Source: Thalia democratica
Taxonomy: Eukaryota
NCBI GenBank assembly: GCA_965202585.1
Contig: OZ241830.1
Coordinates: forward strand, 40,300,001-40,364,000
Direction of reading: 5' to 3'
Length of the DNA stretch: 64,000 bases
Shown: positions 433 to 41,051 of the stretch, in pieces
Numbering within the stretch: the first letter of the stretch is position 1
Layout of the letters: each line of letters starts with the position of its first letter
Position numbers and translations under genes: made by a program
Notes under the pieces: model-generated
The model's input: the letters and a program-made list of their open reading frames with translations, nothing else
What the model was told of the DNA's origin: nothing
Databases searched by the model: none

Positions 433-976
433 TTTGAGTTGTTAGAATTCATCTGATTTGAGTGATTGTTTAAATCAGATCTGGTACTAGACCCACCGTA
501 GTTGCTTTGGTGACCCTGATAACTATATACAATATTAGTAATGCAATTGTTTTTTTATAGACTCATTTCGAATAAAACTTTTTTTATTTAACATTACTTA
601 GCTTACTCTACTAAAAATATGATTTTGTTAAATATAATTTTTAAAATGCTTAATTTAGTCTTTAAACATTAAAATTATTTATTTTTAATTAAACTCTACT
701 TACTTTGAATTGTTCGGATTACATTGATTAGCATGATTATTGGCGTTAGACTGGCTTTGCCTATAAGATAATCTCAATAATAATAAAAAGAGCAAAAAAG
801 GTTTAAAAACTTGAATATAATATAACTAAGTAAATTTAAATTTTAAAGCAATGTACTAACCAAGGTTTAGAATTTCATTAACAAATTTACGAGTACTCAC
901 AACCCTCTTACTAAATAACTTTAGCTTGACTTAAACAATTTTGATAATAAATTCATTTAACAACTTACTTGTCCAT
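433..976 (-). CDS. Asn/Gln-rich two-repeat small protein, copy B1 (partial; exon 4 lies left of the window)
   Basis: Exons 976-969 (ATGGACAA|gtaagt), 760-704 and 522-433, all with GT-AG junctions. Reads MDKQSQSNANNHANQCNPNNSNYQGHQSNYGGSSTRSDLNNHSNQMNSNNS... Confidence 0.85.
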
Positions 977-1042
977 ATTTGTAACTTGTTTTTAAGTGAA
1001 CTGCTTCTAAGAAGTGATAAAACATAACTCATTTCAGCTTAA

Positions 1043-1113
1043 TTTATAGGAGAGTTGTTAACCTAGGTTAATCCCCAATGTGAAAAATAGCTTTCACTTG
1101 TCGGTGAATTCCC
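1043..1113 (-). promoter_or_regulatory. Proximal promoter of B1: TATAAA plus two kB-like sites (GGGGATTAACC, GGGAATTCACC); homologous in the other B and A copies
   Basis: TATAAA at 1048-1043; motifs at 1076-1066 and 1113-1103. The mirror arrangement lies upstream of A1 (GGGAATTTACC 2875-2885, GGGGATTAAT 2911-2920). Confidence 0.55.
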
Positions 1114-1832
1114 TAATCGTCAACTGTACTTTGTAAATAAACATATTATGTAATCGTATATGTCATTGAAAATTTTTTGTTTACTTAAATACACTTTTAA
1201 GTACTTCTTTGTTTACCTTTTTGGAATAAATACAACAACCACTATTTATCACTTTATACACAAACTAGCAAAATCTTTTTCATGTAGTTAAGTGTATAGC
1301 TTTATTGCACAAATCAAAATGTTGAACAATTCTTATTTAATACTAGGTTACGGAAAAAAACATTAAGTTATAACTTTAACAGCAATCTATATTTAATGAA
1401 TTTACTGTAGCATATTATAATATAATGTAATACAAAATGTATATGTTTTATTTATATACAGTTGCGTGAGACTTGTACGCGATTTCCAATTTCGTTTGCC
1501 AATGTAGTTATGCAATCACAAAAAAGTATATAAACACTTAATAAACTCTATACTCTGGTATTTAAAGGTTAAAAGCACACGTTTAGTGTACCAAAATTGT
1601 TTTTATTTTGAGTTACGTCGCACAATGTCCATACTGTTATTTTCTATGAACTTTCAAAACCTTTTAAATACTCATTCATCGCATAATATTTATTAAAACT
1701 GGTATCGTTGTAAAACACTAAAATGTAAATTGATATCATCATAAAATAGTTTTGAATATTCATAAATCATCATAAAAAAAAACAGTTGACGTTTAAGAAA
1801 ACCACCAGTAAATTGAAATAATTTATTAAAAA

Positions 1833-1842
1833 GGGATTTTCC
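1833..1842 (+). promoter_or_regulatory. Consensus NF-kB site GGGATTTTCC, unit 1 spacer
   Basis: Exact match to GGGRNWYYCC; retained in all five spacers. Confidence 0.6.
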
Positions 1843-3004
1843 CAAATGCTTTACTGAATTTTAAAACTATTTGTTTTTATACCTGATTTTATTACTTCAC
1901 AAAAGCGAACACAATTAAATATAAACCATTTTTAATTGATACAAATAGCAATTTTTAATTATATGTTATAATAATATACATGAATCCATAAATAAATAAA
2001 GTTATAGTACTTTGTTTTTAAGCAGCAAATTTTTTGTTTTATATATTTTTCATGAACAAAATACGTTTTAAACTAGAGTTTTAAAGATTACAGTTTAGTT
2101 TATGCGATACATTATTACACAATTTTGAATATTTTTAAACAGGGTTATACCCAAAAACAAAAGCACATTTTAGTGTGTTTAGAATATTTACAATACTGTT
2201 CTGTAACTTTAAACAAATATTTACAATTTTCTCTTAAACCTTTAACAAATATTTAAAGTTAGTGTCAATCATTTTTTATTAAATTCAAAAGTTTTAAAGT
2301 TTTCACTTATCTCTATTAATTTGTCTTAAGAATTTTAGTATTCCGCGATGCATAAATTATAATATATATCTATTCAAAAACTTAAATTAAATTACAAATA
2401 TTTACTAAATAAAAAATATGTTTAAAACTATTTTGGAGCTACTTCAAACTTTCTATACCTGTTTTTCTATCATTTGTATGACTGAAAAAAACTACTTTGT
2501 TGATCAGCAAATATAAAGTTTTAAAACATTTGTATCTAAACTTCAGTAGAAAATTGTTCACATAGTTAACTAAAGTAGCTATTTTCTTAATTATAAAAGG
2601 ATTAATTTTACATGAAGTGTTCAAGTAGTGATGAAGAAGCCTGTTAAGTATTTAATAATCGCTAACTGTAAAAATCATATCTAATGTTGTTTTTGTCATC
2701 AAGTGAAAGTACCCTACTAAGGTATGAGATATAACGTTATAAAATATTGTTATCTAGAGTACCAAATAAGCAACTTCCGTCGGCAAGTCAAAACTATCAT
2801 TTTATTTAAAAACATAAAGTTAAAAAACTTATCATTGTTTAACCTGTTTAAATAGGAAGTACAGTTAACGTTTAGGGAATTTACCAGCAAACATAAATTT
2901 TTCTCACATTGGGGATTAATTAGCATCTTTCGTATATATCAAATTGAGTTGAGGTATTTTTTGTCACTTCATTGAATTTATTCACTTCATAACAAGTTAC
3001 AAAT

Positions 3005-3875
3005 ATGGACAAGTTAGCTGTTTATTGGTTTTGTAGTTGATATAATTAAACTTGCATAAAGCTAATAGTATTGGACAAAAAAGTTAAAATAACTGTGTAG
3101 TCATCAGAGTATTAAGGCTATTTAAGTTTTATAAGTTAATAGTTTAGCTTCATTATATTACACTGAAGTTTTTTTTTAATGTTTTACAAATACTGTTAAT
3201 ATATTTAAATAATAGTTTTTTTACGGGCAAAGCCAGCCTAACGCCAATAACCGTGCTAATCAGTGTAACCCGAACAATTCAAAGTAAGTATAATTTATTT
3301 TAGTACTAAAAAATTTCATGTTCTATAATCTAGTCTAACTTAACTCTACTTACAAAAATAATTTTTAAAAGACATTTTTACTGTGTAAAAAATGGAAAAA
3401 TGTACTTTTGAGCTAGGAATTACAGACATATTAAAACTAGCTAATTTTCTAATTATATACTTTACTCGTAACAAACCTTTTATTATTTATAAGTTATGTT
3501 TTTTCAAAATACAAAACTACTTTATTTATACTTTTCACAGTTATCAGGGTTACCAAAGCAACTACGGTGGGTCTGGTACCAGGTCTGATTTGAACAATCA
3601 CTCAAATCAGATGAATTCTAACAACACTAAGTTAGTTTACATTATTTGTTAGTAAACAACTTCAAATCTGCAAATTCTTTAATAAACATACATACTTTTT
3701 TTTTACTCTAAACAAAACAATCTCGAAATAAAAGATTTTCATTGTAACAAATTTTTATTGAGCTGTAGTGAAATGTATAATACAGTTTCTTAATTTGTAT
3801 TTAAACTTTATTATGATCTATTTTTTATAAAGTATTTTAATAAAGTATTTTTACAGCTACCAAAGAAAGAAGTAG
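3005..3875 (+). pseudogene. Asn/Gln-rich protein copy A1 with a mutated intron-1 acceptor (possible pseudogene)
   Basis: Exons 3005-3012, 3227-3283, 3541-3630, 3857-3875. The acceptor reads tacgg| where other copies have tatag|. It also carries S>P, H>R and G>R changes. An in-frame AG 6 nt downstream could rescue splicing. Confidence 0.65.
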
Positions 3876-4973
3876 GGATAAAAAGAAGCGAAATTTATTG
3901 TTTTTTACTTATTTTCTTCAACAAAAAAAAATATCTAGATCGTTTTACTTTTATCTATAAAAGTAAAGACTTTTAGATTTACGCATAAAAGTATATGATA
4001 AAAAACAATGTAAATTTTTAGACAATATGTACAAAAGACATTTATTTATAAATTGTCTAACTACAAAAGTCTCTACTAAAGTACTGCTCAAGTTAGGGTG
4101 TACAGTACAATGTTTATAAACATTACGACTGCATGACAGTATAACATTATGAAAATGAGTTTTTCAAATGTACCAAGTAAAAACCTTAAAGCTAAATTTT
4201 ACTTATATTTTGAATAGAAATACTTTTAAGTCAAACAAGGTTATAACAGAACTTCCATAATTTTAATTGCTTGATTATAAAAAATTCACTAACTGCTATG
4301 GACAAAAAACTAATATAGAAATGAATTGCGATATGCCTGAAACCAACCTACAACTAAAAAACATTAATTTTAATTGTTTGTAAAAGACTTAGTAATAGTT
4401 ATTTAACGGTTGTTTGATTAAAATTTTGCAATATACAGTTTGTAATTTTTTTTTTGACTTAGATTTTGAAAACTACGCAAGCCGCTAAAAAAATTAATTT
4501 TTAACAGATCTGGTCTGCAAAACACCTTTTTGTGTAAACTAGGGACGTTTATTATATAAATATTTAAAGTGTTGAAATCGGATATAAGCGTAGGTCCATA
4601 AATTTAAGTCTATAAAAAACCTTCAGAAATATTCTTTTATATTCTTATTTGAAAGTTGCTAAAATTAGTACAACAACTGTTACCATGATAATAATACAAA
4701 AAAGCATAAGTTTCAACTCAATCTTTTATATGTAGAATTTAAGCTATTGGAAAAAAAGTTGTTTATATTTATCATTGGACAAAAAAAACATATTTTAATA
4801 AAAACTTTATTTATAACAAAAGCTTATAACAAGTTGTTTTTGTTATTTATTGGTGATTATTGCATTACAAAACATTTGAATATTTATTTATAAAAGTTAT
4901 AAATAGTATTTTTTTTAATACATGCTTGTTGTAAATAAATATAATGCACATGTGAATATCAACAGAGCTTGTA

Positions 4974-5132
4974 TTATTTTCCACTCGAACACATTCTACC
5001 TTCGCACGAAGATCCTACTCGGCTTCTTGATTCTTCTTCAGTGAGACAATCTCCCCTGAACAGGCAGCCTTCAACTGTACTCATGATCATCAACATGACG
5101 AACATCAGTAATGATGCTAATTTACCCAACAT
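4974..5132 (-). CDS. Secreted 4-Cys RGD peptide precursor P1 (52 aa)
   Basis: MLGKLASLLMFVMLMIMSTVEG|CLFRGDCLTEEESRSRVGSSCEGRMCSSGK*. Hydrophobic signal peptide ending VEG; frame intact in four copies with synonymous differences. Confidence 0.9.
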   Translation of the reverse strand: MLGKLASLLMFVMLMIMSTVEGCLFRGDCLTEEESRSRVGSSCEGRMCSSGK

Positions 5133-6542
5133 ATTATATTTAGTTTACTCAAGCTGAAGTATTTACTTTGTTTTGGTTCTTTAGCAATATATGAAATAAA
5201 TTGTTTTAAATAGCTGGTTAATTACAGTATATAACCTATGTTTTGTAAAAATCTGTTATTTTTTCAATAACTTTATTTTTTTAATATTTTTTATAGTTTA
5301 GATTGTTTGCTTTAGCTTTAGCTCTATGTCTACTAGAATCAATTAGCAAAAAGAAATTATTAAAATACCGTTTACAATTTAGTGCAGTGTTTTAAGTCTT
5401 AATTAATAGCTTTTTTTATTTAAGTTCTAATAAAATCTTATTAAAATCCATTATTTATATCAATTTAAATTTTTACTACTAACATTATCAGTATCTAGCG
5501 TTAGGGTCAACAAACTGCAGCCCTAAAAGCAAAAATTTACGGCTGGCTAAGAAACTTTTGACATTAAAAAACTTTACAGTAAACTTCTTAACTAACAATG
5601 ACTAAACTTTATTTGTGCTCTGTTGTGGATTATTTTTGTACAATTAGGTTTAAGAATGATTTTTATATTTTTGCTAGACTTTAAAATAACTGCGTGCTAT
5701 AGAAAACGTTTTCTATCTTATTCACTTATAGAAACTTATAGGTAAATTTGCCGGCTGCTTCTAAATGGCTACTGACCCTCGATCTATTTAGATGCTATTA
5801 CATTTGAAAAAAAAAATTAATACTTTTGAATTATTAAGTATTTGTTTTTACCATTTAGCATAGTAAATGATAACCTAATGAGTTTCCTCAACATTTTTTT
5901 TTTTTATTAGTAAAATAAATTTGTAAATCCTGTACAAACAAACTGTTTTAATGAAAAGTTAGTTAAAAACTTGAGAAAACAGTTAAGTTTGCTGATGAAT
6001 ACGTCTTAGATACCTTTATAATATTTTATGATTGTTATTAATTTACCGGTAAACTAAATTTAGTAGTTATAGAATTTCATTTTCTATGAATATAATTCAA
6101 TTAATTTAATAAAAGCTTCAAAGTTCTGCATTGCTCATGAAATAAATGTATAAAGTATATCCATTTCAAATTCGTTCAAAAATTTAAACAAATAGAATTA
6201 TTTTGTTGGATAAATATAAACTTTTATATAATTTACATTTCTGGCATTTTTTAGTATATTTTTAAGGTTCATATATAAAGTTTTGCACAGATTTACATAG
6301 AACATACTTCATAATTTTCTAAAGACAAATCATGTCTTTTAAAAGCATTAAAAAAAATCATCAGTATATAATTAGAGATAATTTAAGTATTTATATACAA
6401 CTAAAAATTTTTTAATATATAAAACAAAATAGATTTAAAAGAAAAACCTGTTTCTATAATTTACTTCTTTTAAAATTTGTCTAATATAAGCAAATAGTTC
6501 TATCAAACTCATTTTACAGATTAAACTAGCTTCGTACTTTCG

Positions 6543-6574
6543 TTTATATAGCAAATATACACTGATTACGTAAC
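6543..6574 (-). promoter_or_regulatory. Candidate P1 core promoter: TATATAAA plus palindromic PAR-bZIP/C/EBP-type site (ATTACGTAAC)
   Basis: TATATAAA at 6550-6543; site at 6565-6574. The same pair occurs at 15123-15154, 23694-23725 and 32311-32342. A conserved donor (gaa|gtaaat, 6464) and an acceptor ~22 nt before the ATG (5155-5154) would define a 5'UTR intron. Confidence 0.45.
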
Positions 6575-8250: not shown

Positions 8251-9260
8251 TTACTTCTTACCTTGGTAGCTGTAAAATTTATTAATTATATTTAGATATT
8301 CAAACTATTCACTTCTTAGATGTTTGTTAAAAAAACATCCGAACAAAATAAGTTCGTTTTAACATACTAGTAACAGTTTGAAACATTGCTTTATTATATA
8401 TACAAAGTAATTTAGTATTATAAAGCTTGTTTAACAACTCTATGAACAGTGTTACTAGTTTAACAATGAGAAACGTGCGTTAGCTAAATGAAGCAAGTAA
8501 TTTGTAAACTATTTTTATTATTTATATAGTTTTTTGCTTTTACACAAACCATGGTTAGCTAAAACCTTTTGAATCAAACATAGCTGCTTTTTCTAAACTC
8601 TAAATACACAATTATCATATCTTCAACTTTAAAACTTATTTTGGTTGTTCGAAAAATGTGCTAGAAATTTACAAAAAAAATCAAACAAATAATGTAAACT
8701 AACTTTGAGTTGTTAGAATTCATCTGGTTTGAGTGATTGTTCAAATCAGATCTGGTACCAGACCCACCGTAGTTACTTTGGTGACCCTGATAACTATATA
8801 CAATATTAGTAATGCAATTGTGTTTTAATAGACTCATTTCGAATAAAAACTACTTTTATTTAGAATTAATTAGCTTGCTCTACTAAAATTTGAAAAAATC
8901 TTTGATTCTGTTGAAATTATTTTTTTAAATGCTAAGTTTAATTTTTTAACATTAGAATAGATTGTTTTTTAATTAAACATACTTACTTTGAATTGTTCGG
9001 GTTACATTGATTAGCATGATTATTGGCGTTAGACTGGTTTTGCCTATAAAATAAACTCTATAATAATATAAAAAGCAAAGAAAGGTTTAAAAAACTTGAA
9101 TATGATATAACTAATAAATTATTCTTTTAAAGCAATATACTAACTAAATTTTACCATTTAACTATCATATTCACAAGTACTCATAACCCTCTTACTAAAT
9201 GACTTTAGCTTGACTTAAACAGTTTCGATAATAAGTTTGTTAAACAACTTACTTGTCCAT
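8251..9260 (-). CDS. Asn/Gln-rich two-repeat protein copy B2 (57 aa, intact)
   Basis: Exons 9260-9253, 9043-8987, 8793-8704, 8269-8251: MDKQNQSNANNHANQCNPNNSNYQGHQSNYGGSGTRSDLNNHSNQMNSNNSNYQGKK*. Confidence 0.88.
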
Positions 9261-10402: not shown

Positions 10403-10412
10403 GGGATTTTCC
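10403..10412 (+). promoter_or_regulatory. Consensus NF-kB site GGGATTTTCC, unit 2 spacer
   Basis: Exact consensus match at the homologous position. Confidence 0.6.
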
Positions 10413-11565: not shown

Positions 11566-12437
11566 ATGGACAAGTTAGCTGTTTATTGATTTTGTAGTTG
11601 ATATAGTTAAACTTGCATAAAGCTAATAGTATTGGACGAAAAAGTTAAGATAACTCTGTAATCATCATAGAATTAAAGTTTTATAAGTTGATAGATTACC
11701 TTTATTATACTATACTGCAGTTTTAATCATGTTTTACAAATAGATTTAAATAATATTTTTTTTATAGGCAAAGCCAATCTAACGCCAATAACCATGCTAA
11801 TCAATGTAACCCGAACAATTCAAAGTAAGTATAGTTTTTTTAGTACTAAAAAATTTCATGTTCCATAATCTAGTCTAACTTTACTCTACTAACAAAAACA
11901 ATTTCATAAAGAAATGTTTACTGTGTAAAAAAATGGAACAATGTGCTTTTGTGCTAAGAATTACAGACCTTGTAAAACTAGATAACTTTTTAAATATTTA
12001 ATTTACACGACACAAACCTTATATTGTTTATAAGTATATTTTAAATACAAAACTACACTATTTATACTTTTCACAGTTATCAGGGTTACCAAGGCAACTA
12101 CGGTGGGTCTGGTACCAGGTCTGATTTGAACACCACTCAAATCAGATGAATTCTAACAACACTAAGTTAGTTTACATTATTTGTTTATAAATAACTTTAA
12201 ATCTGTAAATTCTTAAATAATTAATATCTTAATTCTTAATTATTTAAATTAAAATATAGTTTTTTTTAATCTTAACAAAACATTATCGAAATATAAGATT
12301 TTTATTGCAACAAATTTTAATTATGCTTCAGTTAAATGTATTAAACAGTTTCTCAAATATTTCAAAAAGCTTTTATGATCTTTTTTATATAAAGTATTTT
12401 AATAACGTGTTTTTACAGCTACCAAGGAAAGAAGTAG
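11566..12437 (+). pseudogene. Asn/Gln-rich protein copy A2, frameshifted
   Basis: Exons 11566-11573, 11768-11824, 12077-12165 (89 nt rather than 90), 12419-12437. gaaca-ccactc versus gaacaaccactc in A3 gives ...DLNTTQIR*. Confidence 0.75.
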
Positions 12438-13522: not shown

Positions 13523-13681
13523 TTATTTTCCACTCGAACACATTCTACCTTCGCACGAAGATCCTACTCGGCTTCTTGATTCTTCTTCAGTGAGACAATC
13601 TCCCCTGAACAGGCAGCCTTCAGCTGTACTCATGATCATCAACATCACAAACATCAGTAATGATGCTAATTTACCCAACAT
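13523..13681 (-). CDS. Secreted 4-Cys RGD peptide precursor P2 (52 aa)
   Basis: MLGKLASLLMFVMLMIMSTAEG|CLFRGDCLTEEESRSRVGSSCEGRMCSSGK*. Confidence 0.9.
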   Translation of the reverse strand: MLGKLASLLMFVMLMIMSTAEGCLFRGDCLTEEESRSRVGSSCEGRMCSSGK

Positions 13682-16600: not shown

Positions 16601-16847
16601 TCTACCAGTTTACAAGTAACAAAAATAACAGTATAAAAATGAATTAACAATATTACAAATTTCGTGAAATATTATAAATGTCTTATTAATAACAAACTTT
16701 TGTTTATTTATTTTTTTATTTACAACTGGTGAAAAGAATTAATTAAAAGTAACTTTATAAAAAGTTTATAATAACGCTAAAAGCATTTAAAGTGTTAAAA
16801 TTCTAACATTTATAATAAATTTTTCAATTTTTTGCTGCGATGTTTTC

Positions 16848-17857
16848 TTACTTCTTACCTTGGTAGCTGTAAAACAATTAATTCTTATTTAGATGTTAAA
16901 ACTGTTATACTTCTTAGATCTTTGTTAAATAAAGATCCCAACGAAATAAATTTGTTTTAACATATTAGCAACAGTTTAGAAATATTGCTTTATTATATTT
17001 ACAAAATTGATTTTGTATTATAAAGCTTGTTTAACAACTCTATAAAAAATTGTGTAACTAGTTTAACAATGAGAAACGTACGTTAGTTTTAACGAAGCAA
17101 GTACTTAGTAATTTTTTAATATTATTTATATAGTTTTCACGTTTACACAAACTATGGTTATTTAAAAGTTTTTGAATCAAACAAAGCTGAATTTATTTAA
17201 ATTTTAAATACACAATTATCATAGTTACAGCTTTGAAGCGTTTTGTGGTTCTTCCGAAAAATATGTCTACAGTTTTCAAAAAAATTTCAAACAAATAATT
17301 TAAACTAACTTTGAGTTGTTAGAAATCATCTGATTTGAATGGTTGTTCAAATCAGATCTGGTACCAGACCCACCGTAGTTACTTTTGTGACCCTGATAAC
17401 TGTTAACAATATTAATAAAGCAATTGTGTTTTTATAGAATCATTTCGAATAAAAAACTTTTATTTTGTAAGAATTAATAAGCTTGCTCTACAAAAGGTTT
17501 AAAAAAATATATTATTCTGTTAAAAGAAATTTTTAAAATGCTAAATTTTGTTTTTAAACATTAAAACTGATTATTTTGTAATTAAACTCTACTTACTTTG
17601 AATTGTTCGGGTTACATTGATTAGCATGATTATTGGCGTTAGACTGGTTTTGCCTATAAAACAAACTCAATAATAATAAAAGAGCGAAGAAAGGTTTTAA
17701 GACTAAAATATAACATAAATTATTAAATTATAGTTTTAAAGCAAAGTTTAGCATTTAACTATCATGTTCACGAGTACTCATAACCCTCTTACTAAATAAC
17801 TTTAGCTTGACTTAAACAATTACAATAATAAAATCATTAAACAACTTACTTGTCCAT
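16848..17857 (-). CDS. Asn/Gln-rich two-repeat protein copy B3 (57 aa, intact)
   Basis: Exons 17857-17850, 17653-17597, 17399-17310, 16866-16848, all GT-AG. Repeat 2 reads NNHSNQMISNN. Confidence 0.87.
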
Positions 17858-18983
17858 GTTTGTAGCTTGTTGTCGAGTGAACTGCTTCTAGAAAAGTGAT
17901 GAAATTAACTCATTTCAGCTTAATTTATAGGAGAGATGCTAATTTAGGTTAATCCCCACTGTGAGAAATAGTATTCACTTGTCGGTGAATTCCCTAACCG
18001 TCAACTGAACGTTCTATTTAAACAAATGTTGTTGTCATATATGTCATTGAAAACTTTTTGTTTACTTTTATATACTTGTTTAGTACTTCTTTGTGTACCT
18101 TTTTGGATTTAATACAACAACAACTTTTTGAAACTTTTTTCACAAACCAGCGCAATTTATAAAAATAGAAAGTATACAATTTTTCATGTAGTTGAGTGTA
18201 TAGCTTTATTGCACAACTCAAAATGTTGAACATTTCTTATTTAATACTAGATTACGGAAAAAAACATATAACTTTAACAGTTATAAAACAATAGACAATA
18301 AAATTAAGTAGTATTTATTATCAACTGAATTGATTATGAAATCTATACATAGTCAACATATAGTTTAAGTCCTTCATATATACTATAGAACTATCCAAAA
18401 ATAGTATTAAAAAGTTCAATTCAAAACCTTAATTATAGTTAAAAAACAATAGAACAATTTTAAAAACTTTTATTAAATTTTTTTTAAATCGTTTCTATAT
18501 TTGTATTTACGCAAAAAATTTGACGTATTGGTTTTTATTGTAATATAAGTATCTATTTTTGATAAACTTATGGTAGTATGTTATAATATAATGTAATACA
18601 ACATATAAATTTAATTTATACACAGTAATGTGAGTTTTTGAACACGTTTTTCAGTTTCGTTTGGAAATGCAGTTGTTCCATCACAAAACAGTATATAAAT
18701 ACTTAATAAAAACACTATACTCTAATTCAAAGATAAAAAGCACACATTTAGTGTACCACAGTTGTTTGTTTTAAGTTACATCGCACGATGTTCATACTGT
18801 AAATTTTTATAAATTTTCGAAAACTTTTAAATACTCATTCATCGCATAGTTCTTAATTAAACTGGTACCGTTATAAAACACTAAAATCTAAATTGAAATT
18901 ATAATAAAATAGTTTTTGATACTTATAAATAAACAGTTGACGTTTATGAAAACCATCAGTAAATTGAAAAGTTTTATTAAAAA

Positions 18984-18993
18984 GGGATTTTCC
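18984..18993 (+). promoter_or_regulatory. Consensus NF-kB site GGGATTTTCC, unit 3 spacer
   Basis: Exact consensus match at the homologous position. Confidence 0.6.
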
Positions 18994-20149
18994 CAAATAT
19001 TTTACTGAGCTTTAAAGCTATTTACTTTTATACGTGATTTTCTTATATCACAAATTCGAACAAGATTTATTTATAAATCACTCCAATTTATTATAAATAA
19101 AAACTTTTATTATTTTATTATTTTATAATTTTATACATGAACACATATAAAAAAAATATTAATATTACTTTGTTTTAAGCATTAAATTTTATTACTTGTG
19201 TTTATATATTCTTATGAACAAAATACGTTTTGAACTCAAGTTTTAAAGATTACAGTTTAGTTAATGTGAAACATTATTACCCAATTTTAATTATTCTTAA
19301 ATAGGGTTATACCCAAAAATAAAAGCACTTTTTTGTGTATTTAGAATATTTACAATACTGTTTTGTAACTTTAAACAAACATTTACAGTTTTTTTCTCAA
19401 ACCTTTAACAAATATGTAGAGTGAGTGTCAATCATTTTTTATTAATTTCAAAACTTTTAAATTTTATTGTTCCACAATGCTTAAACGATAATATAAAATA
19501 CTCAAAAATTTATATTAAAAACATTTAAATCAAAATTAACTGTTTTAATAATAAATATGCTTTAAAAAAACTTTTCAAACTTTCTATATCTTTCTTTTTA
19601 CCATTTGTTGGACTGAAAAAAACTATTTAGTAAATCAAAAAATATCAAGTTTTAAAACATTTGTATCTTAACTTCAATACAAAGTTGTTTACAAAATCAA
19701 TTAAAGTAGCTATATTATTAGTCTCAAAATATTAATTTTACATGTAGTGTTCAAGTAATTATGAAGAAGCTAGTTAAGTACTTAATAATCGCTAACTTTC
19801 ATAAGATATTTAATGTGGTTATTGTCATTAAGTATAAGTATACTACTAAAGTATTAGATATAAAGTTATAAATTATTATTATCTAAAGTTACAAATAAGC
19901 AAATTTCGTTGGAAAGTCAAAACTATAACTTTATTAATAAAACATAAAGTTAACAAACTTATCATTGTTATGACTACTAAACCCGTTCAAATAGGAAGCA
20001 CAGTTAACGTTTAGGGAATTCACCATCAAACAAAACATTTTCACACGTTGGGGATTAACCTAAATTAACATCTCTCGTATAGATTAAGCTGAGTTGAGCT
20101 ATTTTTTGTCATTTCACAGAAGCGGTTCACTCAAAAACAAGTTACAAAT

Positions 20150-21015
20150 ATGGACAAGTTAGTTGTTTCTTAATTTTGTAGTTGATATAGTTAAACTTGC
20201 ATAAAGATAAAAGTATTTGACGAAAATGTTAAAATAACTGTGTAATTACCATAGAATTAAAGTTTTATAAGTTGAAAGATTACCTTTATTATACTATACT
20301 GCAGTTTTTATCATGTTTTACAAATATTATTAGTATATATAGATATTAATAATTGTTTTTTTATAGGCAAAGTCAATCTAACGCCAATAACCATGCTAAT
20401 CAATGTAACCCGAACAATTCAAAGTAAGTAGAATTTATTTTAATACTAAAAAATTTTATGTTCCATAATCTAGTCTAACTTTACTCTACTAATAAAAACA
20501 ATTTCATAAAGAAGTTTTTACTGTGTAAAAAAATGGAACAATGTGCTTTTGTGCTGAGAATTACAGACATATTAAAACTAGATAACTTTTTAAATATTTA
20601 ATTTACACGACACAAACCTTATATTGTTTATAAGTTAAGTATAATTTAAATACAAAACTACACTATTTATACTTTTCACAGTTATCGGGGTTACCAAAGC
20701 AACTACGGTGGGTCTGGTACCAGGTCTGATTTGAACAACCACTCAAATCAGATGAATTCTAACAACACTAAGTTAGTTTACATTATTTGTTAGTAAACAA
20801 CTTCAAATCTGCAAATTATTTAATAAACATACATAGTTTTTTTTTACTCTAAACAAAACATTCTCGAAATATAAGATTTTTATTGTAACACATTTTAATT
20901 ATGCTTCACTTAAATGTATTAAACAGTTTCTCAGATTTAAAAAAAAGTTTTTATGATCTTTTTTATATAAAGTATTTTAATAAAGTGTTTTTACAGCTAC
21001 CAAGGAAAGAAGTAG
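20150..21015 (+). CDS. Asn/Gln-rich two-repeat protein copy A3 (57 aa, intact)
   Basis: Exons 20150-20157, 20367-20423, 20682-20771, 20997-21015: MDKQSQSNANNHANQCNPNNSNYRGYQSNYGGSGTRSDLNNHSNQMNSNNTNYQGKK*. Confidence 0.88.
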
Positions 21016-22080
21016 GAATAAAAAGAATCAAAACTATTTTTTTTTACTTATTTTCTTCAATAAATAATAAAAACATAAAATCGCTTATCTTTTATCTATA
21101 AAAGTAAAGACTTTTAGATTTTTACATAAAAGCATATGATAAAAAACAACAAAGATATATAGACAATATGTACAAAAAACATTTGTTTATAAATTGTCTA
21201 ACTACAATAGTCTCAACTAAAGTACGGCTCAAGTTAGGGTGTACACTGTTCATAAACATTACGACTGCTTAACAGTATAACAATATGAAAACGAGTTTTT
21301 CAAATGTACCAAGTAAAAACCTTAAAGCTAAATTTTACTTATATTTTGAATAGAAATACTTTTCATGTCAAATAAGGTTATAACACCACTTTCATAATTC
21401 TAATTAATTGACATTAAAAAAATCCACTTACTGCTATGCACAAAAGACTAGTAAAGAAATAAATTGTGATATGCCTGAAACTAACCTACAACTAAAAACA
21501 TTAAATTTCATTGTTTTTAAAATGCTTAGTAATGGTTACTCAACGATTGTTTGATTAAAAGTTTGCAATATACAGTTTGTTTTTTTTTTCTAATTTTTAA
21601 AAACTACGCAACCCGCTAAATAAATTTTCTAACAGATGTGGTCTGCAAAACACCTTTTTGTGTAAACTAGGGACGTTTATTATATAAATAACTAAAATGT
21701 TGAAATCGGATATAAGCGTAGGTCTATAAATTTAAGTCTATGAAAAACCTTCAGAAATATTCATTTATATTTTTATTTGAAAGTTATTAAAATTAGTACA
21801 ACAACTGTTACCATGATAATAATACAAAAAAAATTTATCAACTCAATCTTTAATATGTAGAATTTAAGCAAGTTATTATTGGAAAAAAAACATATTTTAA
21901 TAAAAACTTGATATGTAACAAAAGCTTATAATAAGTTGTTTCCAAAATCTATTGGTGATTCTTTTATTACAAAACATTTAAATATTTATTTACAAAAGTT
22001 ATATATAGTTTTAATTTTTTTTATTACATGCTTGTTGTAAATAAATATAATGCACATATGAATATCAAAAGAGCTTGTAC

Positions 22081-22239
22081 TTATTTTCCACTCGAACACA
22101 TTCTACCTTCGCACGAAGATCCTACTCGGCTTCTCGATTCTTCTTCAGTGAGGCAATCTCCCCTGAACAGGCAGCCTTCAGCCGTACTCATGATCATCAA
22201 CATCACGAACATCAGTAATGATGCAAATTTACCCAACAT
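22081..22239 (-). CDS. Secreted 4-Cys RGD peptide precursor P3 (52 aa)
   Basis: MLGKFASLLMFVMLMIMSTAEG|same mature peptide; two synonymous changes (TGC, TCG) in the mature region. Confidence 0.9.
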   Translation of the reverse strand: MLGKFASLLMFVMLMIMSTAEGCLFRGDCLTEEESRSRVGSSCEGRMCSSGK

Positions 22240-25422: not shown

Positions 25423-26456
25423 TTACTTCTTACCTTGATAGCTGTAAAATGAGTAATGGTTATTTATATGTTCAAAATCTTACACTTTTTAGATGTTTGT
25501 TAAAATAAGATAAGAACGAAATAAATTCGTTTGAACATAAAAGCAACAATTTACGAAGTCCTTATTTTATTATATATACAAAATTAATTTAGTATTATAA
25601 AGCTTGTTTAACAACTCTATTAAACAGTGTTACTAGTTTAACAATGAGAAACGTACGTTAGTTTAAATAAAGCAAGTACTTTGTAAATTATTATTATTAT
25701 TATTTATGTATTTTTCACGTTTACACAAACTATGGTTAGCTAAAAGCTTTTAAATCAAACATAGCTTTTTTTTCTAAACTTCAAATACATAGTTATCATA
25801 GTTACAAGTTTAAAAATTTTTGTTGTTGGTCCGAAAAATATGTTCAAAAATTTAAAACATTTTTGTACAAATAGCTTAAACTAACTTTGAATTGTTAAAA
25901 TTCATCTGATTTTAGTGATTGTTCAAATCAGATCTGGTACCAGACCCACCGTAGCTGCTTTGGTAACCCTGATAACTGTGAACAATATTAGTAATGCAGT
26001 TGTGTTTTTATAGACTCATTTTGAATATAAACCTTTTTTAATTAGAATTAATTAGCTTGCTCTACTAAAGTTTGAAAAAAATTATGATTCTGTTAAAATT
26101 AATTCTAAATATGCTAAGTTTAGTTTTTAAACATTAAAATTAATTATTTTTCAATCAAACTTTACTTACTTTGAATTGTTCGGGTTACATTGATTAGCAT
26201 GATTATTGGCGTTAGACTGGCTTTGCCTGTAAGATAAAATCAATAACAATATAAAGAGCAAATAAAGGTTTTAATACTTGAATTTATATAACTAAGTAAA
26301 TTATTCTTTAAAAGCAATATACTAACTAAATTTTAGCATTTAACTATCATATTCACAAGTACTCATAAGTTATGAGTCATAACCCTCTTACTAAACAACT
26401 TTAGCTTGACTTAAACAACTTCACTGATAAAATCATAAAACAACTTACTTGTCCAT
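25423..26456 (-). pseudogene. Asn/Gln-rich protein copy B4 with a premature stop
   Basis: Exons 26456-26449, 26226-26170, 25975-25886, 25441-25423. TCA>TAA at 25914-25912 truncates repeat 2 after NNH. Confidence 0.8.
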
Positions 26457-27598: not shown

Positions 27599-27608
27599 GG
27601 GATTTTCC
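27599..27608 (+). promoter_or_regulatory. Consensus NF-kB site GGGATTTTCC, unit 4 spacer
   Basis: Exact consensus match at the homologous position. Confidence 0.6.
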
Positions 27609-28758: not shown

Positions 28759-29623
28759 ATGGACAAGTTAGTTGTTTATTGATTTTGTAATTGATATAGT
28801 TAAACTTGCATAAAGATAATAGTATTGGACTAAAAAGTTAAAATAACTCTGTAATCATCATAAAATTAAAGTTTTATAAGTTGATAGATTACCTTTATCA
28901 TACTATACTGAAGTTTATCATGTTTTACAAATATTATTAGTATATATACATATAAATAATAATTTTTTTATAGGCAAAGCCAATCTAACTCCAATAACCA
29001 TGCTAATCAATGTAACCCGAACAATTCAAAGTAAGTAGAGTTTATTTTAATACTAAAAAATTTCATGTTCCATAATCTAGTCTAACTTTACTCTACTAAC
29101 AAAAATAATTTTAAAAGGACATTTTTACTGTGTAAAAAAATAGAACAATGTGCTTTTTTGCTAAGAATTACAGACATATTAAAACTAGATAACTTTATAA
29201 ATATTTTATTTACACGACACAAACCTTTTATTATTTATAAGTTATGTTTTTTCAAAATACAAAACTACACTATTTATACTTTTCACAGTTATCAGGGTTA
29301 CCAAAGCAACTACGGTGGGTCTGGTACCAGGTCTGATTTGAACAATCACTCAAATCAGATGAATTCTAACAACGCTAAGTTAGTTTACATTATTTTTTGG
29401 TAAATAACTTTAAAATCTGTAAATTCTTAAATAAACGAACATAGTTTTTTTTTAATCTTAACAAAACATTATCGAAATATAAGATTTTTATTGTAACAAA
29501 TTTTAATTATGCTTCAGTTAAATGTATTAAACAGTTTCTCAAATTTTTCAAAAAGCTTTTATGATCTTTTTTATATAAAGTATTTTAATAACGTGTTTTT
29601 ACAGCTACCAAGGAAAGAAGTAG
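28759..29623 (+). CDS. Asn/Gln-rich two-repeat protein copy A4 (57 aa, intact)
   Basis: Exons 28759-28766, 28974-29030, 29289-29378, 29605-29623; all GT-AG, frame open. Confidence 0.88.
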
Positions 29624-30709: not shown

Positions 30710-30868
30710 TTATTTTCCACTCGAACACATTCTACCTTCGCACGAAGATCCTACTCGGCTTCTTGATTCTTCTTCAGTGAGACAATCTCCCCTGAACAGG
30801 CAGCCTTCAGCAGTACTCATGATCATCAACATCACAAACATCAGTAATGATGCAAATTTGCCCAACAT
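30710..30868 (-). CDS. Secreted 4-Cys RGD peptide precursor P4 (52 aa)
   Basis: MLGKFASLLMFVMLMIMSTAEG|CLFRGDCLTEEESRSRVGSSCEGRMCSSGK*. Confidence 0.9.
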   Translation of the reverse strand: MLGKFASLLMFVMLMIMSTAEGCLFRGDCLTEEESRSRVGSSCEGRMCSSGK

Positions 30869-33800: not shown

Positions 33801-34036
33801 GTTTACAAGTAACAAAAATAAAAGTATAAAAATGAATTAAAAGTATTACAAATTACGTGAAATATTATAAATGTCTAATTAATAAAAAATTTTTGTTAAC
33901 TTATTTTTTATTTACAACTGGTGAAAAGAATTAAAAAGTAACTTTATAAAAAGTTTATAAAAACGCTAAAAGCATTTAAAGTGTTAAAATTCTAACAATT
34001 AAAATAAATTTTTCAATTTTTTGCTGCGATGTTTTC

Positions 34037-35044
34037 TTACTTCTTACCTTGGTAGCTGTAAAACAAGTAATTGTTATTTAGATGTTAAAACTGTTATACT
34101 TCTTAGATCTTTGTTAAATAAAGATCCGAACAAAATAAATTTGTTTTAACATATCAGCAACAGATTAGAAATATTGCTTTATTATATATACAAAAGTAAT
34201 ATAGTATTATAAAGCTTGTTTAACAACTCTATGAAACAGTGTTACTAGTTTAACAATGAGAAACGTACGTTAGTTTAAATGAAGCTAGTACTTAGTAATT
34301 TTTTTTTGTTATTTATATAGTTTTCACGTTTACACAAACTATGGTTATTTAAAAATTTTTGAATCAAACAAAGCTGATTTTATCTAAATTTTAAATACAC
34401 AATTATCATAGTTACAGCTTTGAAGCGTTTTATGGTTCTTCCGAAAAATATGTCTACAGTTTTCAAAAAAATTTCAAACAAATAATTTAAACTAACTTTG
34501 AGTTGTTAGAATTCATCTGATTTGAGTGGTTGTTCAAATCAGATCTGGTACCAGACCCACCGTAGTTACTTTTGTGACCCTGATAACTGTTAAAAATATT
34601 AATAAAGCAATTGTGTTTTTATAGAATCATTTCGAATAAAAAACTTTTTTTTTGTAAGAATTAATAAGCTTGCTCTACAAAAGGTTTAAAAACATATATT
34701 ATTCTGTTAAAAGAAATTTTTAAAATGCTAAATTTTGTTTTTAAACATTAAAACTGATTATTTTGTAATTAAACTCTACTTACTTTGAATTGTTCGGGTT
34801 ACATTGATTAGCATGATTATTGGCGTTAGACTGGTTTTGCCTATAAAACAAACTCAATAATAATAAAAGAGCGAAGAAAGGTTTTAAGACTAAAATATAA
34901 CATAAATTATTAAATTATAGTTTTAAAGCAAAGTGTAGCATTTAACTATCATATTGACGAGTACTCATAACCCTCTCACTAGATAACTTTAGCTTGACTT
35001 AAACAATTACAATAATAAAATCATTAAACAACTTACTTGTCCAT
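34037..35044 (-). CDS. Asn/Gln-rich two-repeat protein copy B5 (57 aa, intact)
   Basis: Exons 35044-35037, 34840-34784, 34586-34497, 34055-34037; frame open. Confidence 0.88.
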
Positions 35045-35914
35045 ATTTATAACTTGTTGTCGAGTGAACTGCTTCTAAGAAGTGATAAAAAATTACTCAT
35101 TTCAGCTTAATTTATAGGAGTGATGCTAATTTAGGTGAATCCCCAATGTGTGAAATAGTTTTCACTCGTCGGTGAATTCCCTAATCGTCAACTGTACTTT
35201 CTATTTAAACATATTTTGTAATCGTATATGTCATTGAAAACTTTTTATTTACTTTTATATGCTTGTTTAGTACTTCTTTGTTTACCTTTTTGGATTAAAT
35301 ACAACAACAACTTTTTGAAACTTTTTTCACAAACCAGCACAATTTATAAAAATAGAAAGTATACAATTGTTCATATAGTTGAGTGTATAGCTTTATTGCA
35401 CAACTCAAAATGTTGAACAATTCTTATTCAATACTAGATTACGGAAAAAAAATATATAACTTAAACTATATTTTGACTATGTATAGATTTCATAATCAAT
35501 TCAGTTGATAGTAAATACTACTAAACTTATATTGTCTATTGTTTTATAAATGTTAAAGTCTTTCATATATTATAGAACTATCCAAAAATAGTATTATAAA
35601 GTTCAATTCAAAACCTTAATTATAGTTTAAAAACAATAGAATAACTTTGAAAACTTTTATTAATTTTTTTCTTAATGTGTTTCTTAATTTGTAGTTACGC
35701 AAAAATTTGACATTTTGGTTTTTATTGTAAAATAATTATCTATATTTAATAAACTTATTGTAGTATGTTTTAGTATAATGTAATACAACATATAGATTTA
35801 ATTTATACACAGTAATGTGAGTTTTTGAACACGTTTTTCAGTTTTGTTTGCCTATGCAGTTGTTCCATCCCAAAACAGTATATAAATACTTAATTAAAAC
35901 TCTATACTCTAGAG

Positions 35915-38730
35915 TAGGGGTGGGCAACGTAAATAATTGACGGGCCGGATCCAAAAAAAATTAAGTCTCAGCGGGCCGGAGCATTTAGAGTAAGTGATTT
36001 ACCGGATCCAGCTGGATCCTTTTATAGATCCGGATCCTTATTTAATGATATTATCCGGATCTGGCAAAATACTATTTTTAGACAAGGTTCCGGATCCGAA
36101 TAGAATCTAATTCCAAAAAAGATTTGGCTTCCGTCTGGTGTTTTAGAATTTTGAATTAAGTATGAAATTTTATGTTAATTCTATATTGATTTTAACTTTG
36201 AACCGAACTAATACTACTTAATCTTATAAAACCAAAAATTTACTTACTAAAAGTTACTCGAGCCTAACATTTCAAGCTGTAAATTAAAAATAAATTAACT
36301 ATTTGAAACTGTCTAATTTTGACAACCCTTGGCTGGAGTTTACATTAATAATATTATTCAGAAGTTTACTTACATTATGGTGTTAAACTACTACCTTTTA
36401 ATTTAAATAAACTTATAAAGATTCTTTACATATTTTTGCACGTATAAAAGAATCGAAAGAACAAATAAATTTTCTATAATAAACAGTTTTACCATAATTA
36501 GCGAAAAAAAAATTAAATGATGCAGATGAAACACTTAAGGTTGATAATGAATTAGAGTTGTTTAAAAGTTGCATGACGGTTTGGAAAAATCTGCAAGTGC
36601 ACTGGAATACTGATTCGGTATAAAATTAGCTAATCCTTAATGATCTTTAAGGTCGAAAATGTTTGTCTGCAAATGTATGAAGTCTCGAACAAAACAACTG
36701 GTTTCATGGTCATCTTTTGAAGTTGACAAAATTTGGCTTGCTCAATGGTACATAAAATCTATCTAAAAATCTACTAAGAACAACAAAAATTATATGTTTA
36801 ATTTAAATTTTTTTATCAACTTATTTACAAAACTGTTAAACTTAGATAATATAAGAAAATATTGAAACTAAACCTTTTTCAAAATCTATAAAAAAACTGG
36901 ACTGGGATTATTAAAAATGATAAAATAATCATTTGATTTTTTTTTTAAAGCTAAACAGGTCCTGAGAAAATCTTGTTTTTTTTTGAAATTTAAATTATCG
37001 TGAGTAATCCTGAAATTTATAAAAAATATCCTGAGTACACCAAATATCCTGATTGTGTAGATATCTTGAGGTTATGGAGGACTTTTTGAATTTTAAAAGT
37101 ACAACTTTTGCTATTTGTTTTTAGTAAAAAATTACAATTAAGGTCAAAAATTGTGCTTAATAGTATATAATTAATGAAGATACTAAATATATTTAAAAAT
37201 TAAAAAATATAAAAACATATATACAACATTTTTTATCTTATCTAAATTTCATCATTTTATGTAAAAATTGTTAAGGTTTTATCTTGTTATTTTTTAAGTA
37301 CTAAATTGTTGGCAATAAAATTAACTTTGCCAAAATTTTCAAGTTCAACGTTCTTTCAATATTATAGATTAAATATCTAATCCGATACTACAATCTAAAG
37401 GAGATAAAACAAATCTATAAATATTAAACATCTTGCAAAATATGTTTTATTTATTCCAAATTATAATAGGATTGCTCTTTTTGAAAAAACTTAACTTGTT
37501 GAACTAAAATAAGTCTGAGTTTAAAAGAAAAGTCAAATAAAAATTTGATGTCATCCAAGTTTGAAAAATTAACCATTTATCAATCTTAAATACCTAATAA
37601 CATCAAAATAACAATAAAATGCTTAATGAGAATAAAATTGAAAGTTATTATAACCAAACCATAAAATTTTGCCTGCCATTTATAAAAATATAAATAATAT
37701 CCTAAGTTAGCAGAGCTTTTATAGAATTTTAGACTAGCCAGAGTTATTTAGTAGTCTTAATGTGAGTCAACCTTTCTCAAAACATGATAAATTATTTCAA
37801 AAGTAAAATTAATAGATAAGAAACTTTTTTGTACTTTACTTTTAGAATTTAACAACTATTATTTAAAATTTTACTAGATTGTAAACTGTTACTACAAACA
37901 TAAACAAATAAATTTTCAAACAAATCATACTTGAAATTAATGAGATACTATTTTGAAATATTGTTATAATTTGGTTATAACCAAATTTAATCATTCAATT
38001 AATTAAAAAGTCCGTAGTTAAAAATCAATAGCAGAAAAGAGTGCAAACTGTTATCTCAACTTGGAATATTTTACTAAAATGTAAAGTTAAGCACTTTAAC
38101 TTAAAATAATTGTCAATGTCTAAATAAATAAAAAAGTTAACTTTTATAAAATCAACTCACTGCACATCTGCGTTAGACAGCAATTTTTTACACGTCCATT
38201 TTTTATGAAGGTGAATATAGTAGGTTGTAATACAACCGTTGTAATACAACCGTTGTAATACAACCGTTATAATACAACCGTTGTAATACAACCGTTATAA
38301 TACAACCGTTGTAATACAACCGTTGTATCATCAAGTAAGTTGTAACAGCATAAAAATGTTTATGGGGTAATTTGAGAAAGGATTGTTTTAACTGACTTAA
38401 ACCAAAATATCATACCATAACAAAATGGTGTTTTTTCACCACAAAAATAAAAAGCCATTTTTAAAACCGTTATCAGGGTCAAAGTCTTACAGATTTGTTT
38501 TGCGAAAACAATTCAAAAGAGGTTTCGCAAAAATTCTGTAATTATTACATTGGCTTTTCAGATTTCATACAAATTTTAAAAATACCTAGCGGGCCGGATC
38601 ACCTACTCGCGGGCCGGATCAATTTTGTCCGCGGGCCGGATTCCATTTAAACTTAAAAATGGTTTGGGGGCCGGTCGTTTTCACTCCGCGGGCCGGATCC
38701 GGCCCGCGGGCCGTACGTTGCCCACCCCTA
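35915..38730. mobile_element. Non-autonomous hAT-superfamily DNA transposon (2816 bp)
   Basis: 16-bp TIRs TAGGGGTGGGCAACGT / ACGTTGCCCACCCCTA; 8-bp TSD CTCTAGAG (35907-35914, 38731-38738); repeated subterminal GCGGGCCGGATC motifs. Absent from the other four spacers; no intact transposase ORF. Confidence 0.92.
38224..38327. repeat. 14-bp minisatellite (GTTGTAATACAACC) x~7.4 inside the hAT element
   Basis: Seven full units, two of them with GTTATA, plus a partial unit; no spacers. Confidence 0.95.
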
Positions 38731-38984
38731 CTCTAGAGTCTAATAATTCAAAGATAAAAAGCACACATTTAGTGTACCACAGTTGTTATAATTTTATGTT
38801 ACGTTGCACAATGTTCATACTGTAATTTTTTATGAATTTTCGAAAACTTTTAAATACTCATTCATCGCAATTGTTAATTTAAACTGATATCATCATAAAA
38901 TAGTTTTGAATATTCAAAAATCATCGTAAAAAAACAGTTGACGTTTAAGAAAACCACCAGTAAATTGAAAACATTTATCAAAAA

Positions 38985-38994
38985 GGGATTTTCC
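38985..38994 (+). promoter_or_regulatory. Consensus NF-kB site GGGATTTTCC, unit 5 spacer
   Basis: Exact consensus match; lies on the A5 side of the hAT insertion. Confidence 0.6.
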
Positions 38995-40171
38995 CAAATA
39001 TTTTACCTAATTTTAAAATTATTTATTTTTATACCTGATTTTATTACTTCACAAAAGCGAACACAATTAATTTATAAACCATTTCAAATTGTTACAAATA
39101 ATAACTTTTAAATTTATGTTATTATAATATACATGAACTCATAAAAAGATAAAGTAATAGTTTTTTGTGTTAAGCATTAAATTTATTGCTTGTGTTTATA
39201 TATTTTTCATGAACAAAATACGTTTTAAACTAAAGTTTTAAAGATTGCAGTTTAGTTTATGCGATACATTATTACACAATTTTGATTATTTCTAAATAGG
39301 GTTATACCCAAAAACAAAAGCACTTTTTGTGTATTTAGAATATTTACAATACTGTTTTGTAACTTTAAACAAACATTTACAGTTTTTTTTCAAACCTTTA
39401 ACAAATATGTAAAGCGAGTGTCAATCATTTTTCATTAATTTCAAAACTTTTAAAGTTTTAATTAATCTCTATTAAAATGTCTTAAAATTTTAGTGTTCCG
39501 CAGTACATAAATTATAATATAATTCTATTCTAGTCATTAAATTAAAGTTGAGATTAAAGTTAACTGTTAAATAAAAAATATGTTTAAATTGTTTTGTAGC
39601 TAATTCAAAATTTGTATAACTAAAAAAAAATGTTTTGTTAATCAACAAATATCAATTTTTTAAGCATTTGTATCTAAACTTCAATACAAAGTTTTTTACA
39701 AAATTAACTAAAGTAGCTATTTTCATTAGAATCAAAAGATTAATTTTACATTTAGTGTTCTTGAAGTAATTATGAAGAAGTTTGTTAAGTATTTAATAAT
39801 CGCTAACTGTAAAAAAATATTTAATGTGGTTTTTGGCATTAAGTGAATGTATATATTTAAAATATTAGATATAACATAATACAGCGATAAGTTCTAAAGT
39901 TACAAATAAGCAAATTTCGTTGGAAAGTCAAAACTATCATTTTATTTGTAAAACATAAAGTTAACAAACTTATCTTTGTTATGACTACTAAACCCGTTCA
40001 AATAGGAAGTACAGTTAACGTTTAGGGAATTCACCAGCAAACAAAACATTTTCACACATTGGAGATTAACCTAAATTAATATCTCTCGTATATATTAAGC
40101 TGAGTTGAGCTATTTTTTGTCACTTCATAGAAGCTTCATAGAAGCAGTTCACTCGAAAACAAGTTACTAAT

Positions 40172-41051
40172 ATGGACAAGTTAGTTGTTTAATGATTTTG
40201 TAGTTAATACAGTTAAACTTGCTAAAGCTAATAGTATTGGACGAAAAAGTTAAAATAGCTGTATAATCATCATAAAATTAAAGTTTTATAAGTTGATAGT
40301 TTAGCTTCATTATACTATACTGAAGTTTTTTATTTTTTGCAAATACTGTTAATGTATTTAAAAATCAGTATTTTTTGTAGGCAAAGCCAGTCTGACGCCA
40401 ATAACCATGCTAATCAATGTAACCCGAACAATTCAAAGTAAGTAGAATTTATTTTGTTACTAAAATGATATCTATATTTATTATCATATTAAGAATGTAT
40501 GTTTTTTACTCTGGTCTAACTTTACTCTACTAACAAAAAATAAGTTTATAAAGACATTTTTTATGTGTAAAAAAATGGAAAAATGTGCTTTTGTGCTAGG
40601 AATTACAGACATGATAAAACTAATTATAAACTTTTTGAAATATTTCATTCGCACGACACAAACCTAATGTAGTTTATAAGTTAATTTATTTTAAATACAA
40701 TATTACACTATTTATACTTTTCACAGTTATCAGAACTACCAAAGCAACTATGGTGGGTCTGGTACCAGATCTGATTTGAACAATCACTCGAATCAGATGA
40801 ATCCTAACAACTCAAAGTTAGTTTACATTATTTTTTCGGAAACAACTTAAAATCTGTAAATATTTTAATAAACATACATAGTTGTTTTTTGCTATAAACC
40901 ATACAGTATCAAATCTATGAGATTCTGTTGTGAAAAAAATAGTTAAGTTTTAGTAAAATGTATTAAGTTGTGTATCAGTTTTTTTAAAAAGTATATATGA
41001 TCTTTCTGAATAGCATTAAAATATTTTCACAGCTACCAAGGAAAGAAGTAG
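40172..41051 (+). CDS. Asn/Gln-rich two-repeat protein copy A5 (57 aa, intact, most divergent)
   Basis: Exons 40172-40179, 40381-40437, 40727-40816, 41033-41051: MDKQSQSDANNHANQCNPNNSNYQNYQSNYGGSGTRSDLNNHSNQMNPNNSNYQGKK*. Confidence 0.88.

Follow-up and report, generated by a model that had tools for sequence, protein, structure and literature searches.

The 64,000-nucleotide stretch of Thalia democratica DNA analysed here (positions 40300001-40364000 of contig C6 of the 802-Mb genome, hereafter the window) carries ten copies of a four-exon gene for a protein of 57 residues that is rich in asparagine and glutamine. The copies very probably represent a real gene family, whose products belong to a wider family characterised by an NQxNPNN repeat. 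As judged from sequence similarity, the window protein is a member of an ancient unnamed family of animals, other eukaryotes, bacteria and archaea. Taken as a whole, these are probably genuine genes of this old family, encoding a soluble intracellular microprotein, hydrophilin-like or partner-binding, that has been amplified for dosage. The window has 24% GC and no runs of N. In a six-frame motif scan, the peptide pieces described in a first-pass annotation of the same DNA were located at ten places, five on each strand, and the range of 433-41051 which that annotation assigned to a ten-copy family extends from exon 3 of the copy named B1 to exon 4 of the copy named A5.

The ten loci were aligned and their exons were assigned by pattern. 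Every locus exhibits an 8-nt first coding exon, ATGGACAA, which is followed by GT[AT]AGT and then by exons of 57, 90 and 19 nt, and the exon sizes and the two-repeat structure proposed earlier are thus correct. All three introns are in phase 2, and their borders are GT..AG with the exception of one acceptor in A1. A stop codon and a separate TATA box are present at each locus, and an AATAAA is found after the stop codon. In every copy, introns 2 and 3 occupy matching positions of the two internal repeats, with identical codon and phase (N|YQG, inside the Asn codon); either repeat and intron were duplicated as one, or two separate insertions hit the same proto-splice site. The two 16-residue repeats of A3 are identical at 12 of 16 positions.

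Seven of the window copies are intact (A3, A4, A5, B1, B2, B3 and B5) and three are broken (A1, A2 and B4), the A copies lying on the forward strand and the B copies on the reverse strand. A3, which serves as the reference model, spans 20150-21015 (exons at 20150-20157, 20367-20423, 20682-20771 and 20997-21015), with its TATA box at 20076 and an AATAAA about 45 nt 3' of the stop codon. A4 spans 28759-29623 (28759-28766, 28974-29030, 29289-29378 and 29605-29623), and A5, the most diverged A copy, spans 40172-41051 (40172-40179, 40381-40437, 40727-40816 and 41033-41051). Among the reverse-strand copies, B1 (1-976 within the window) has its first three exons at 969-976, 704-760 and 433-522, and its fourth exon lies 9-27 nt before the window start. 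B2 spans 8251-9260 (exons 1 to 4 at 9253-9260, 8987-9043, 8704-8793 and 8251-8269), B3 spans 16848-17857 (17850-17857, 17597-17653, 17310-17399 and 16848-16866), and B5 spans 34037-35044 (35037-35044, 34784-34840, 34497-34586 and 34037-34055). The 57-residue sequence of the first-pass annotation is the consensus of the A copies and is not the exact product of any one of them, A3 exhibiting R24 and A4 exhibiting S9 and A51.

The three broken copies have different lesions. In A1, a probable pseudogene at 3005-3875 (3005-3012, 3227-3283, 3541-3630 and 3857-3875), the acceptor of exon 2 has changed from AG to GG at 3225-3226. A2 (11566-12437) is frameshifted by a 1-nt deletion near 12133, which leaves 89 nt in exon 3 (12077-12165), and is either a pseudogene or the result of an assembly indel. 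B4, at 25423-26456 on the reverse strand (26449-26456, 26170-26226, 25886-25975 and 25423-25441), is a pseudogene with an in-frame TAA at 25912-25914 in exon 3.

Purifying selection acts on the reading frame to a degree far beyond chance, as is characteristic of genes that are translated. Between intact A-type copies and intact copies of the B type and of the related loci on another chromosome (contig C5), the ratio of non-synonymous to synonymous differences (pN/pS) is 0.145 in the proposed frame (pS 0.258, pN 0.037), compared with 0.93 and 1.57 in the two shifted frames. In eight intact copies, stops are absent from the proposed frame but number 16 and 59 in the shifted frames, and third codon positions account for 15 of the 28 columns that vary among intact copies. 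Among the A copies, divergence is 2-6% in exons and 12-18% in introns. When A copies are compared with B copies, divergence rises to 6-9% in exons 2 and 3 and to 40-50% in introns, and introns 2 and 3 have no similarity detectable by BLAST. It is because the low pN/pS is confined to the proposed frame, and because exons are kept while introns diverge, that we regard the gene as translated. The same data bear on the possibility that the exons are only conserved pieces of a segmental repeat, or of a decaying and unexpressed gene array. That 5 of the 14 loci in the genome are broken, and that contigs placed on the array are DNA-like and without spliced joints, would fit such a view. Nevertheless, we consider it highly improbable, as selection acts in the proposed frame only, the splice sites, start, stop and TATA box are all kept in the intact copies, and the full-length products are collinear with homologs of the same size in many phyla.

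These homologs were found by similarity searches run exon by exon or with database proteins, and the joined products were scored locally against a profile of their own family. Exon 3 of A4 with open flanks (29260-29400) matched a single protein, designated P0001, which is a contiguous open reading frame (ORF) of 57 residues on a 1.7-kb Logan contig, beginning with MDK and ending with KK. P0001 in turn retrieved 29 relatives, including Ciona intestinalis H2XY69 (P0019, 57 residues) and proteins of a termite, a cricket, a bee, a springtail and a bdelloid rotifer; all 29 carry the label hypothetical or uncharacterised and lack Pfam domains. In a local alignment, H2XY69 is 67% identical to the window proteins (copy A4), is equal in length and is alike at both ends, which is evidence for the short exons at the two ends of the gene (8 nt and 19 nt). 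Exons 2 and 3 of A4 align in order to residues 4-21 and 33-51 of the Ciona protein, with E values of 7e-6 and 4e-9, respectively.

The joined window products score 71-76 bits against a family profile of 80 sequences, which none of 200 shuffled versions matched. A profile search of 1.84 billion representatives yielded 448 clusters (50% identity) at E<=1e-3 and 164 at E<=1e-10. A word-indexed profile search yielded 672 proteins at E<=1e-5, the named ones bearing no label other than hypothetical. The named members come from Mytilus, Mercenaria, Lamellibrachia, Gryllus, Apolygus and several ants and bees, and are all uncharacterised. Homologs were found in Ciona, termite, cricket, bee, ant, springtail, rotifer, mussel, clam and tubeworm. 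The first-pass annotation had likened the motif to that of small uncharacterised invertebrate proteins. Such proteins do exist in a tunicate, insects, a springtail, a rotifer, molluscs and an annelid, all labelled hypothetical; the family is broader than that comparison, as it reaches bacteria and archaea. No match at curated cut-offs was obtained in Pfam-A or NCBIfam, where only sub-threshold chance matches appeared, and none by PDB sequence search or Foldseek. A protein atlas returned only 'hypothetical protein' clusters, all with scores below 0.9, and a literature search by motif, accession and description found no paper on an NQxNPNN-repeat family.

Family members carry one to three copies of the repeat unit [DN]-N-H-x-N-Q-[CLM]-N-P-N-N-x-x-Y. 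A member of the Ciona H2XY69 type would be expected to have about 50-70 residues with two N-[HRK]-x-N-Q-x-N-P-N copies joined by a G-x4-Y-x-G-x-G-T linker, and the window copies exhibit this arrangement. The invariant columns of the family (N, Q, N, P, G, Y, G, D, N, Q, N and P) are present in every intact window copy with one exception, the proline of the second repeat, which is replaced by serine (NSNN in place of NPNN) in all intact window copies but A5. A metal site formed by cysteine or histidine was considered and rejected, neither residue being among the columns conserved at >=90% in the 80-sequence alignment.

With regard to prokaryotes, a scan of one genome per species confirmed 112 bacterial and archaeal loci. 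They occur in Shewanella, Rheinheimera, Flavobacterium, Massilia, Desulfobacter, Nitrosopumilaceae, an Asgard metagenome-assembled genome and others, and some of the contigs that carry them are several Mb long. Their ORFs encode 35-70 residues with one to three DNHxNQ[LM]NPNN..Y motifs. The eukaryotic and prokaryotic profiles align with an hhalign probability of 99.2% (E 1.4e-19), the eukaryotic form exhibiting an extra Gly/Tyr linker of 12 residues. Homologs on plasmid records are annotated 'hypothetical protein', and integrases or resolvases occur occasionally near bacterial homologs. The gene for an ankyrin-repeat protein of 907 residues precedes the motif ORF on the same strand, at a distance of about 85-100 nt, in the gammaproteobacteria Shewanella, Rheinheimera and Alkalimonas. 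In other Alteromonadales and in one Aequorivita, the motif ORF faces away from a protein of 350-480 residues without a match in Pfam.

The ankyrin-repeat neighbour is one of the reasons to consider that the protein is a partner-binding module, its invariant Asn/Gln/Pro/Tyr surface contacting an enzyme, a ribosome, nucleic acid or a membrane protein, in which case it would be a regulator and not a bulk protectant. Identical positions are kept from archaea to tunicates, which is unusual for a protectant that depends on composition, and the module also forms the tail of proteins that are otherwise unrelated (PLAC8-like, tetraspanin-like, glycine-zipper and single-transmembrane proteins). However, the ankyrin neighbour is confined to one group of related gammaproteobacteria, the bacterial neighbourhoods exhibit no consistent partner, and ORF calls that extend too far may explain some of the long fusions. 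We therefore regard partner binding alone as a possible explanation, though a somewhat doubtful one.

The eight intact copies encode very hydrophilic proteins, with a grand average of hydropathy of -1.93 to -2.07. The window proteins have 39-42% Asn plus Gln, 5-7% Tyr and an isoelectric point (pI) of 8-9.4. An N-terminal signal peptide, the mark of secreted antimicrobial or signalling peptides, is absent from the window proteins, as the first-pass annotation had reported, because each contains only 3-4 I, L, V, M, F or W residues; their N-terminus (MDKQSQSN...) is polar. Hydrophilins are defined by a glycine content >6% and a hydrophilicity index >1 (PMC11277543). The eight intact copies lie above both values, with 7.0-10.5% glycine and a hydrophilicity of about 2.

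The residue content of the relatives is different. Asn plus Gln amounts to 20-32% in orthologs, compared with about 40% in the window proteins, and the bacterial homologs are mostly strongly acidic (pI ~4). The extreme Asn/Gln content of the window proteins is partly due to the Asn-rich motif itself, and drift under the low GC content of the genome (24%) may account for part of the Asn excess. In an AlphaFold2 model of the Ciona protein, built with the 80-sequence alignment (mean predicted local distance difference test score, pLDDT, 76.8; predicted template modelling score, pTM, 0.39), helices occupy residues 5-16 and 36-45 and each ends at an NPNN turn. The repeat unit is thus predicted to form a short helix ended by an Asn-Pro turn.

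In the first-pass annotation, the composition was taken as prion-like or amyloid-prone and, with the kB sites, as suggestive of an inducible intracellular defence or stress effector. On this view, an amyloid-prone protein rich in Asn, Gln and Tyr would assemble upon induction through NF-kB. The high content of Asn plus Gln (~40%) and of Tyr is what such an effector would have. Canonical and near-canonical kB sites are also conserved in every unit of the array, and each unit includes a gene for a 52-residue, weakly defensin-like peptide with a signal peptide and four cysteines. Conservation is, however, by position and not by composition, as the failure of all shuffled versions to match the profile indicates; the orthologs have as little as half of the Asn and Gln, the bacterial members are acidic, and the prediction is of two short helices and not of low-complexity sequence without features. 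Prion-like domains are composition-dependent N/Q-rich regions, usually of at least 60 residues, and the usual prion-domain core, following the PLAAC defaults, is about 60 residues long. The window proteins, with 57 residues and an order-dependent similarity, fall outside this description. The prion-like reading has weak support, given that conservation is position-specific and that the composition differs among relatives, and we consider such an effector improbable.

The genes are arranged in a unit of about 8.6 kb which, according to repeat finding and BLAST, is repeated five times in tandem over roughly 1-43000. Each unit comprises one reverse-strand copy (B1-B5) and one forward-strand copy (A1-A5) placed head to head, with a distance from ATG to ATG of 2.0-2.3 kb in units 1 to 4 and of 5.1 kb in unit 5. 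Compared with the intergenic regions of about 2.3 kb in units 2-4, that of unit 5 (35045-40171, 5.1 kb) apparently contains an insertion of about 2.8 kb without a long ORF. The ten copies first described are all in the window, but the family extends beyond it. A search of the whole genome identified three further B-type loci on contig C5, at 14.94, 14.99 and 15.05 Mb, one of which (C5b) is intact while the other two have stops, frameshifts or lost splice sites. One more intact copy, on the unplaced contig C1259, is near-identical to B1 and resembles an alternative copy of it. The genome thus has 14 loci, 5 of them broken, and at least 13 copies of the gene. Such a proportion of broken loci reflects birth-and-death turnover in the array.

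A TATA box of its own precedes the ATG of every gene by about 70 nt. Since each gene also has its own AATAAA, the sequence marks the ten genes as separate transcription units with separate core promoters, not as pairs sharing one bidirectional promoter. The region between B3 and A3 (17858-20149, ~2.3 kb) has equivalents in the other units. Motifs of the types GGGAATTCAC and GGGGATT[AC]ACC lie upstream of each TATA box, and GGGRATTYAC occurs 12 times, also upstream of TATA boxes. The canonical kB site GGGATTTTCC is found once per unit in the middle of the region (18984-18993 between B3 and A3); it has 5 matches in the window against 0.27 expected, the five being copies of one another. The kB sites pointed out in the first-pass annotation are therefore present, and the kB-type motifs fall inside runs that are invariant across all five units. 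They are compatible with inducible expression. A pyrimidine tract followed by [CT]AG|AAGC[AG]G is found about 30 nt upstream of the ATG in all ten copies (20100-20122 in A3, with the AG at 20118-20119) and is duplicated in A5; this site could be a candidate spliced-leader trans-splice acceptor.

A third gene accompanies the facing pair, and the array can therefore be described as five times peptide (reverse strand), B (reverse strand) and A (forward strand). It is an ORF of 52 residues, intact on the reverse strand at 4974-5132, 13523-13681, 22081-22239 and 30710-30868, with further copies at 40296792-40296944 of contig C6 and at 20589-20744 of contig C1259. The encoded peptide exhibits a hydrophobic signal-peptide-like start, followed by a part of 30 residues with four cysteines, an RGD and a C-terminal GK. 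The four copies in the window have only two residue differences, both in the signal-peptide-like part, and the peptide block is the most conserved part of the unit, with 98% invariant columns compared with a mean of 68%. No Pfam match was obtained for the peptide. Nodule Cys-rich peptides, termicin and conotoxins were the only leads from the protein atlas, and they were weak (0.82). It is conceivable, although we regard it as unlikely, that the NQxNPNN repeat is an undescribed and very old module of all three domains of life that was recruited here into a three-gene stress or immune cassette under regulation of the NF-kB type. The array would then represent an inducible stress or immune locus of a new kind, with the microprotein as its arm inside the cell and a defensin-like secreted peptide beside it.

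Based on these observations, we propose the following explanation for the array. A cassette of about 8.6 kb, tandemly repeated five times on contig C6, holds in each repeat two facing four-exon genes for the 57-residue protein. The protein would stay intracellular as a soluble helix-turn-helix or partly disordered microprotein, and may act as a hydrophilin-like protectant or bind a conserved partner through its invariant Asn/Gln face. The array, with its TATA promoters, would serve a high or rapidly inducible dosage. The mechanism is the tentative part of this explanation, and we hold it as possible only.

Several points weigh against the proposed explanation. The function assigned to the protein is our best guess, its mechanism being drawn only from physico-chemistry and promoter features. 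Contigs from sequencing runs over 16800-21100 are colinear, fragmented and DNA-like, with no joint at the predicted introns. Three of the ten window copies and two of the three copies on contig C5 are broken, and the constraint on any single copy is therefore loose. The AlphaFold2 pTM is low, and three of the five models have a mean pLDDT <60, so that the predicted fold is treated as a lead only. Many bacterial homologs lie below the 6% glycine threshold of hydrophilins. No partner recurs across phyla in the bacterial gene neighbourhoods, the ankyrin-repeat neighbour being limited to one clade.

Gene finders routinely overlook microproteins of fewer than 60 residues whose first exon is tiny, and the one described here is under clear purifying selection. 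Its family comprises hundreds of sequence clusters across animals, protists, bacteria and archaea for which neither a Pfam or NCBIfam model nor a solved structure was found. A name for the family and for its repeat unit makes annotation easier, and the Ciona ortholog and the Shewanella homolog are tractable systems. The tunicate array is also a clean example of birth-and-death evolution within a three-gene cassette.

Outside the array, an ORF of 74 residues on the forward strand at 54841-55065 resembles a degenerate histone H4, as it begins with MSDRGKGG and contains ...RRLA.RGGVK, and is probably a decayed copy. A near-perfect inverted repeat, with arms of 224 nt that are 94% complementary and separated by a spacer of 3 nt, is located at 49017-49467. 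Rfam and tRNA scans of the window gave no matches.

With regard to known systems, the fungal Con-6 and the bacterial KGG-repeat proteins YciG and GsiB are likewise small, hydrophilic, two-repeat proteins of the stress type, and the repeats of Con-6 contain an NPN-type motif. Membership in either family was rejected, as neither appeared when 23 family members were compared with Pfam-A by hmmscan at E<=10. The window proteins resemble hydrophilins, the class that includes the late embryogenesis abundant (LEA) proteins and yeast Hsp12 and Sip18, in being small, in having more than 6% glycine and a hydrophilicity above 1, and in having no signal peptide. They differ from them in that the microprotein family has no sequence relation to any Pfam family, hydrophilin and LEA families included. 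The small bacterial and archaeal ORFs share the repeat unit of the window proteins, with 1-3 DNHxNQ[LM]NPNN..Y motifs; in contrast to the window proteins, they do not possess the 12-residue Gly/Tyr linker and most are strongly acidic. Ciona intestinalis H2XY69 shares with the window proteins the length of 57 residues, the ends MD[KR]Q... and ...NYQGKK, the two NQxNPNN motifs and the G...Y.G.GT linker. Compared with H2XY69 and its relatives, the gene of Thalia democratica has been amplified to at least 13 loci in an array of three-gene cassettes, and the content of Asn plus Gln of its product has been raised to about 40%.

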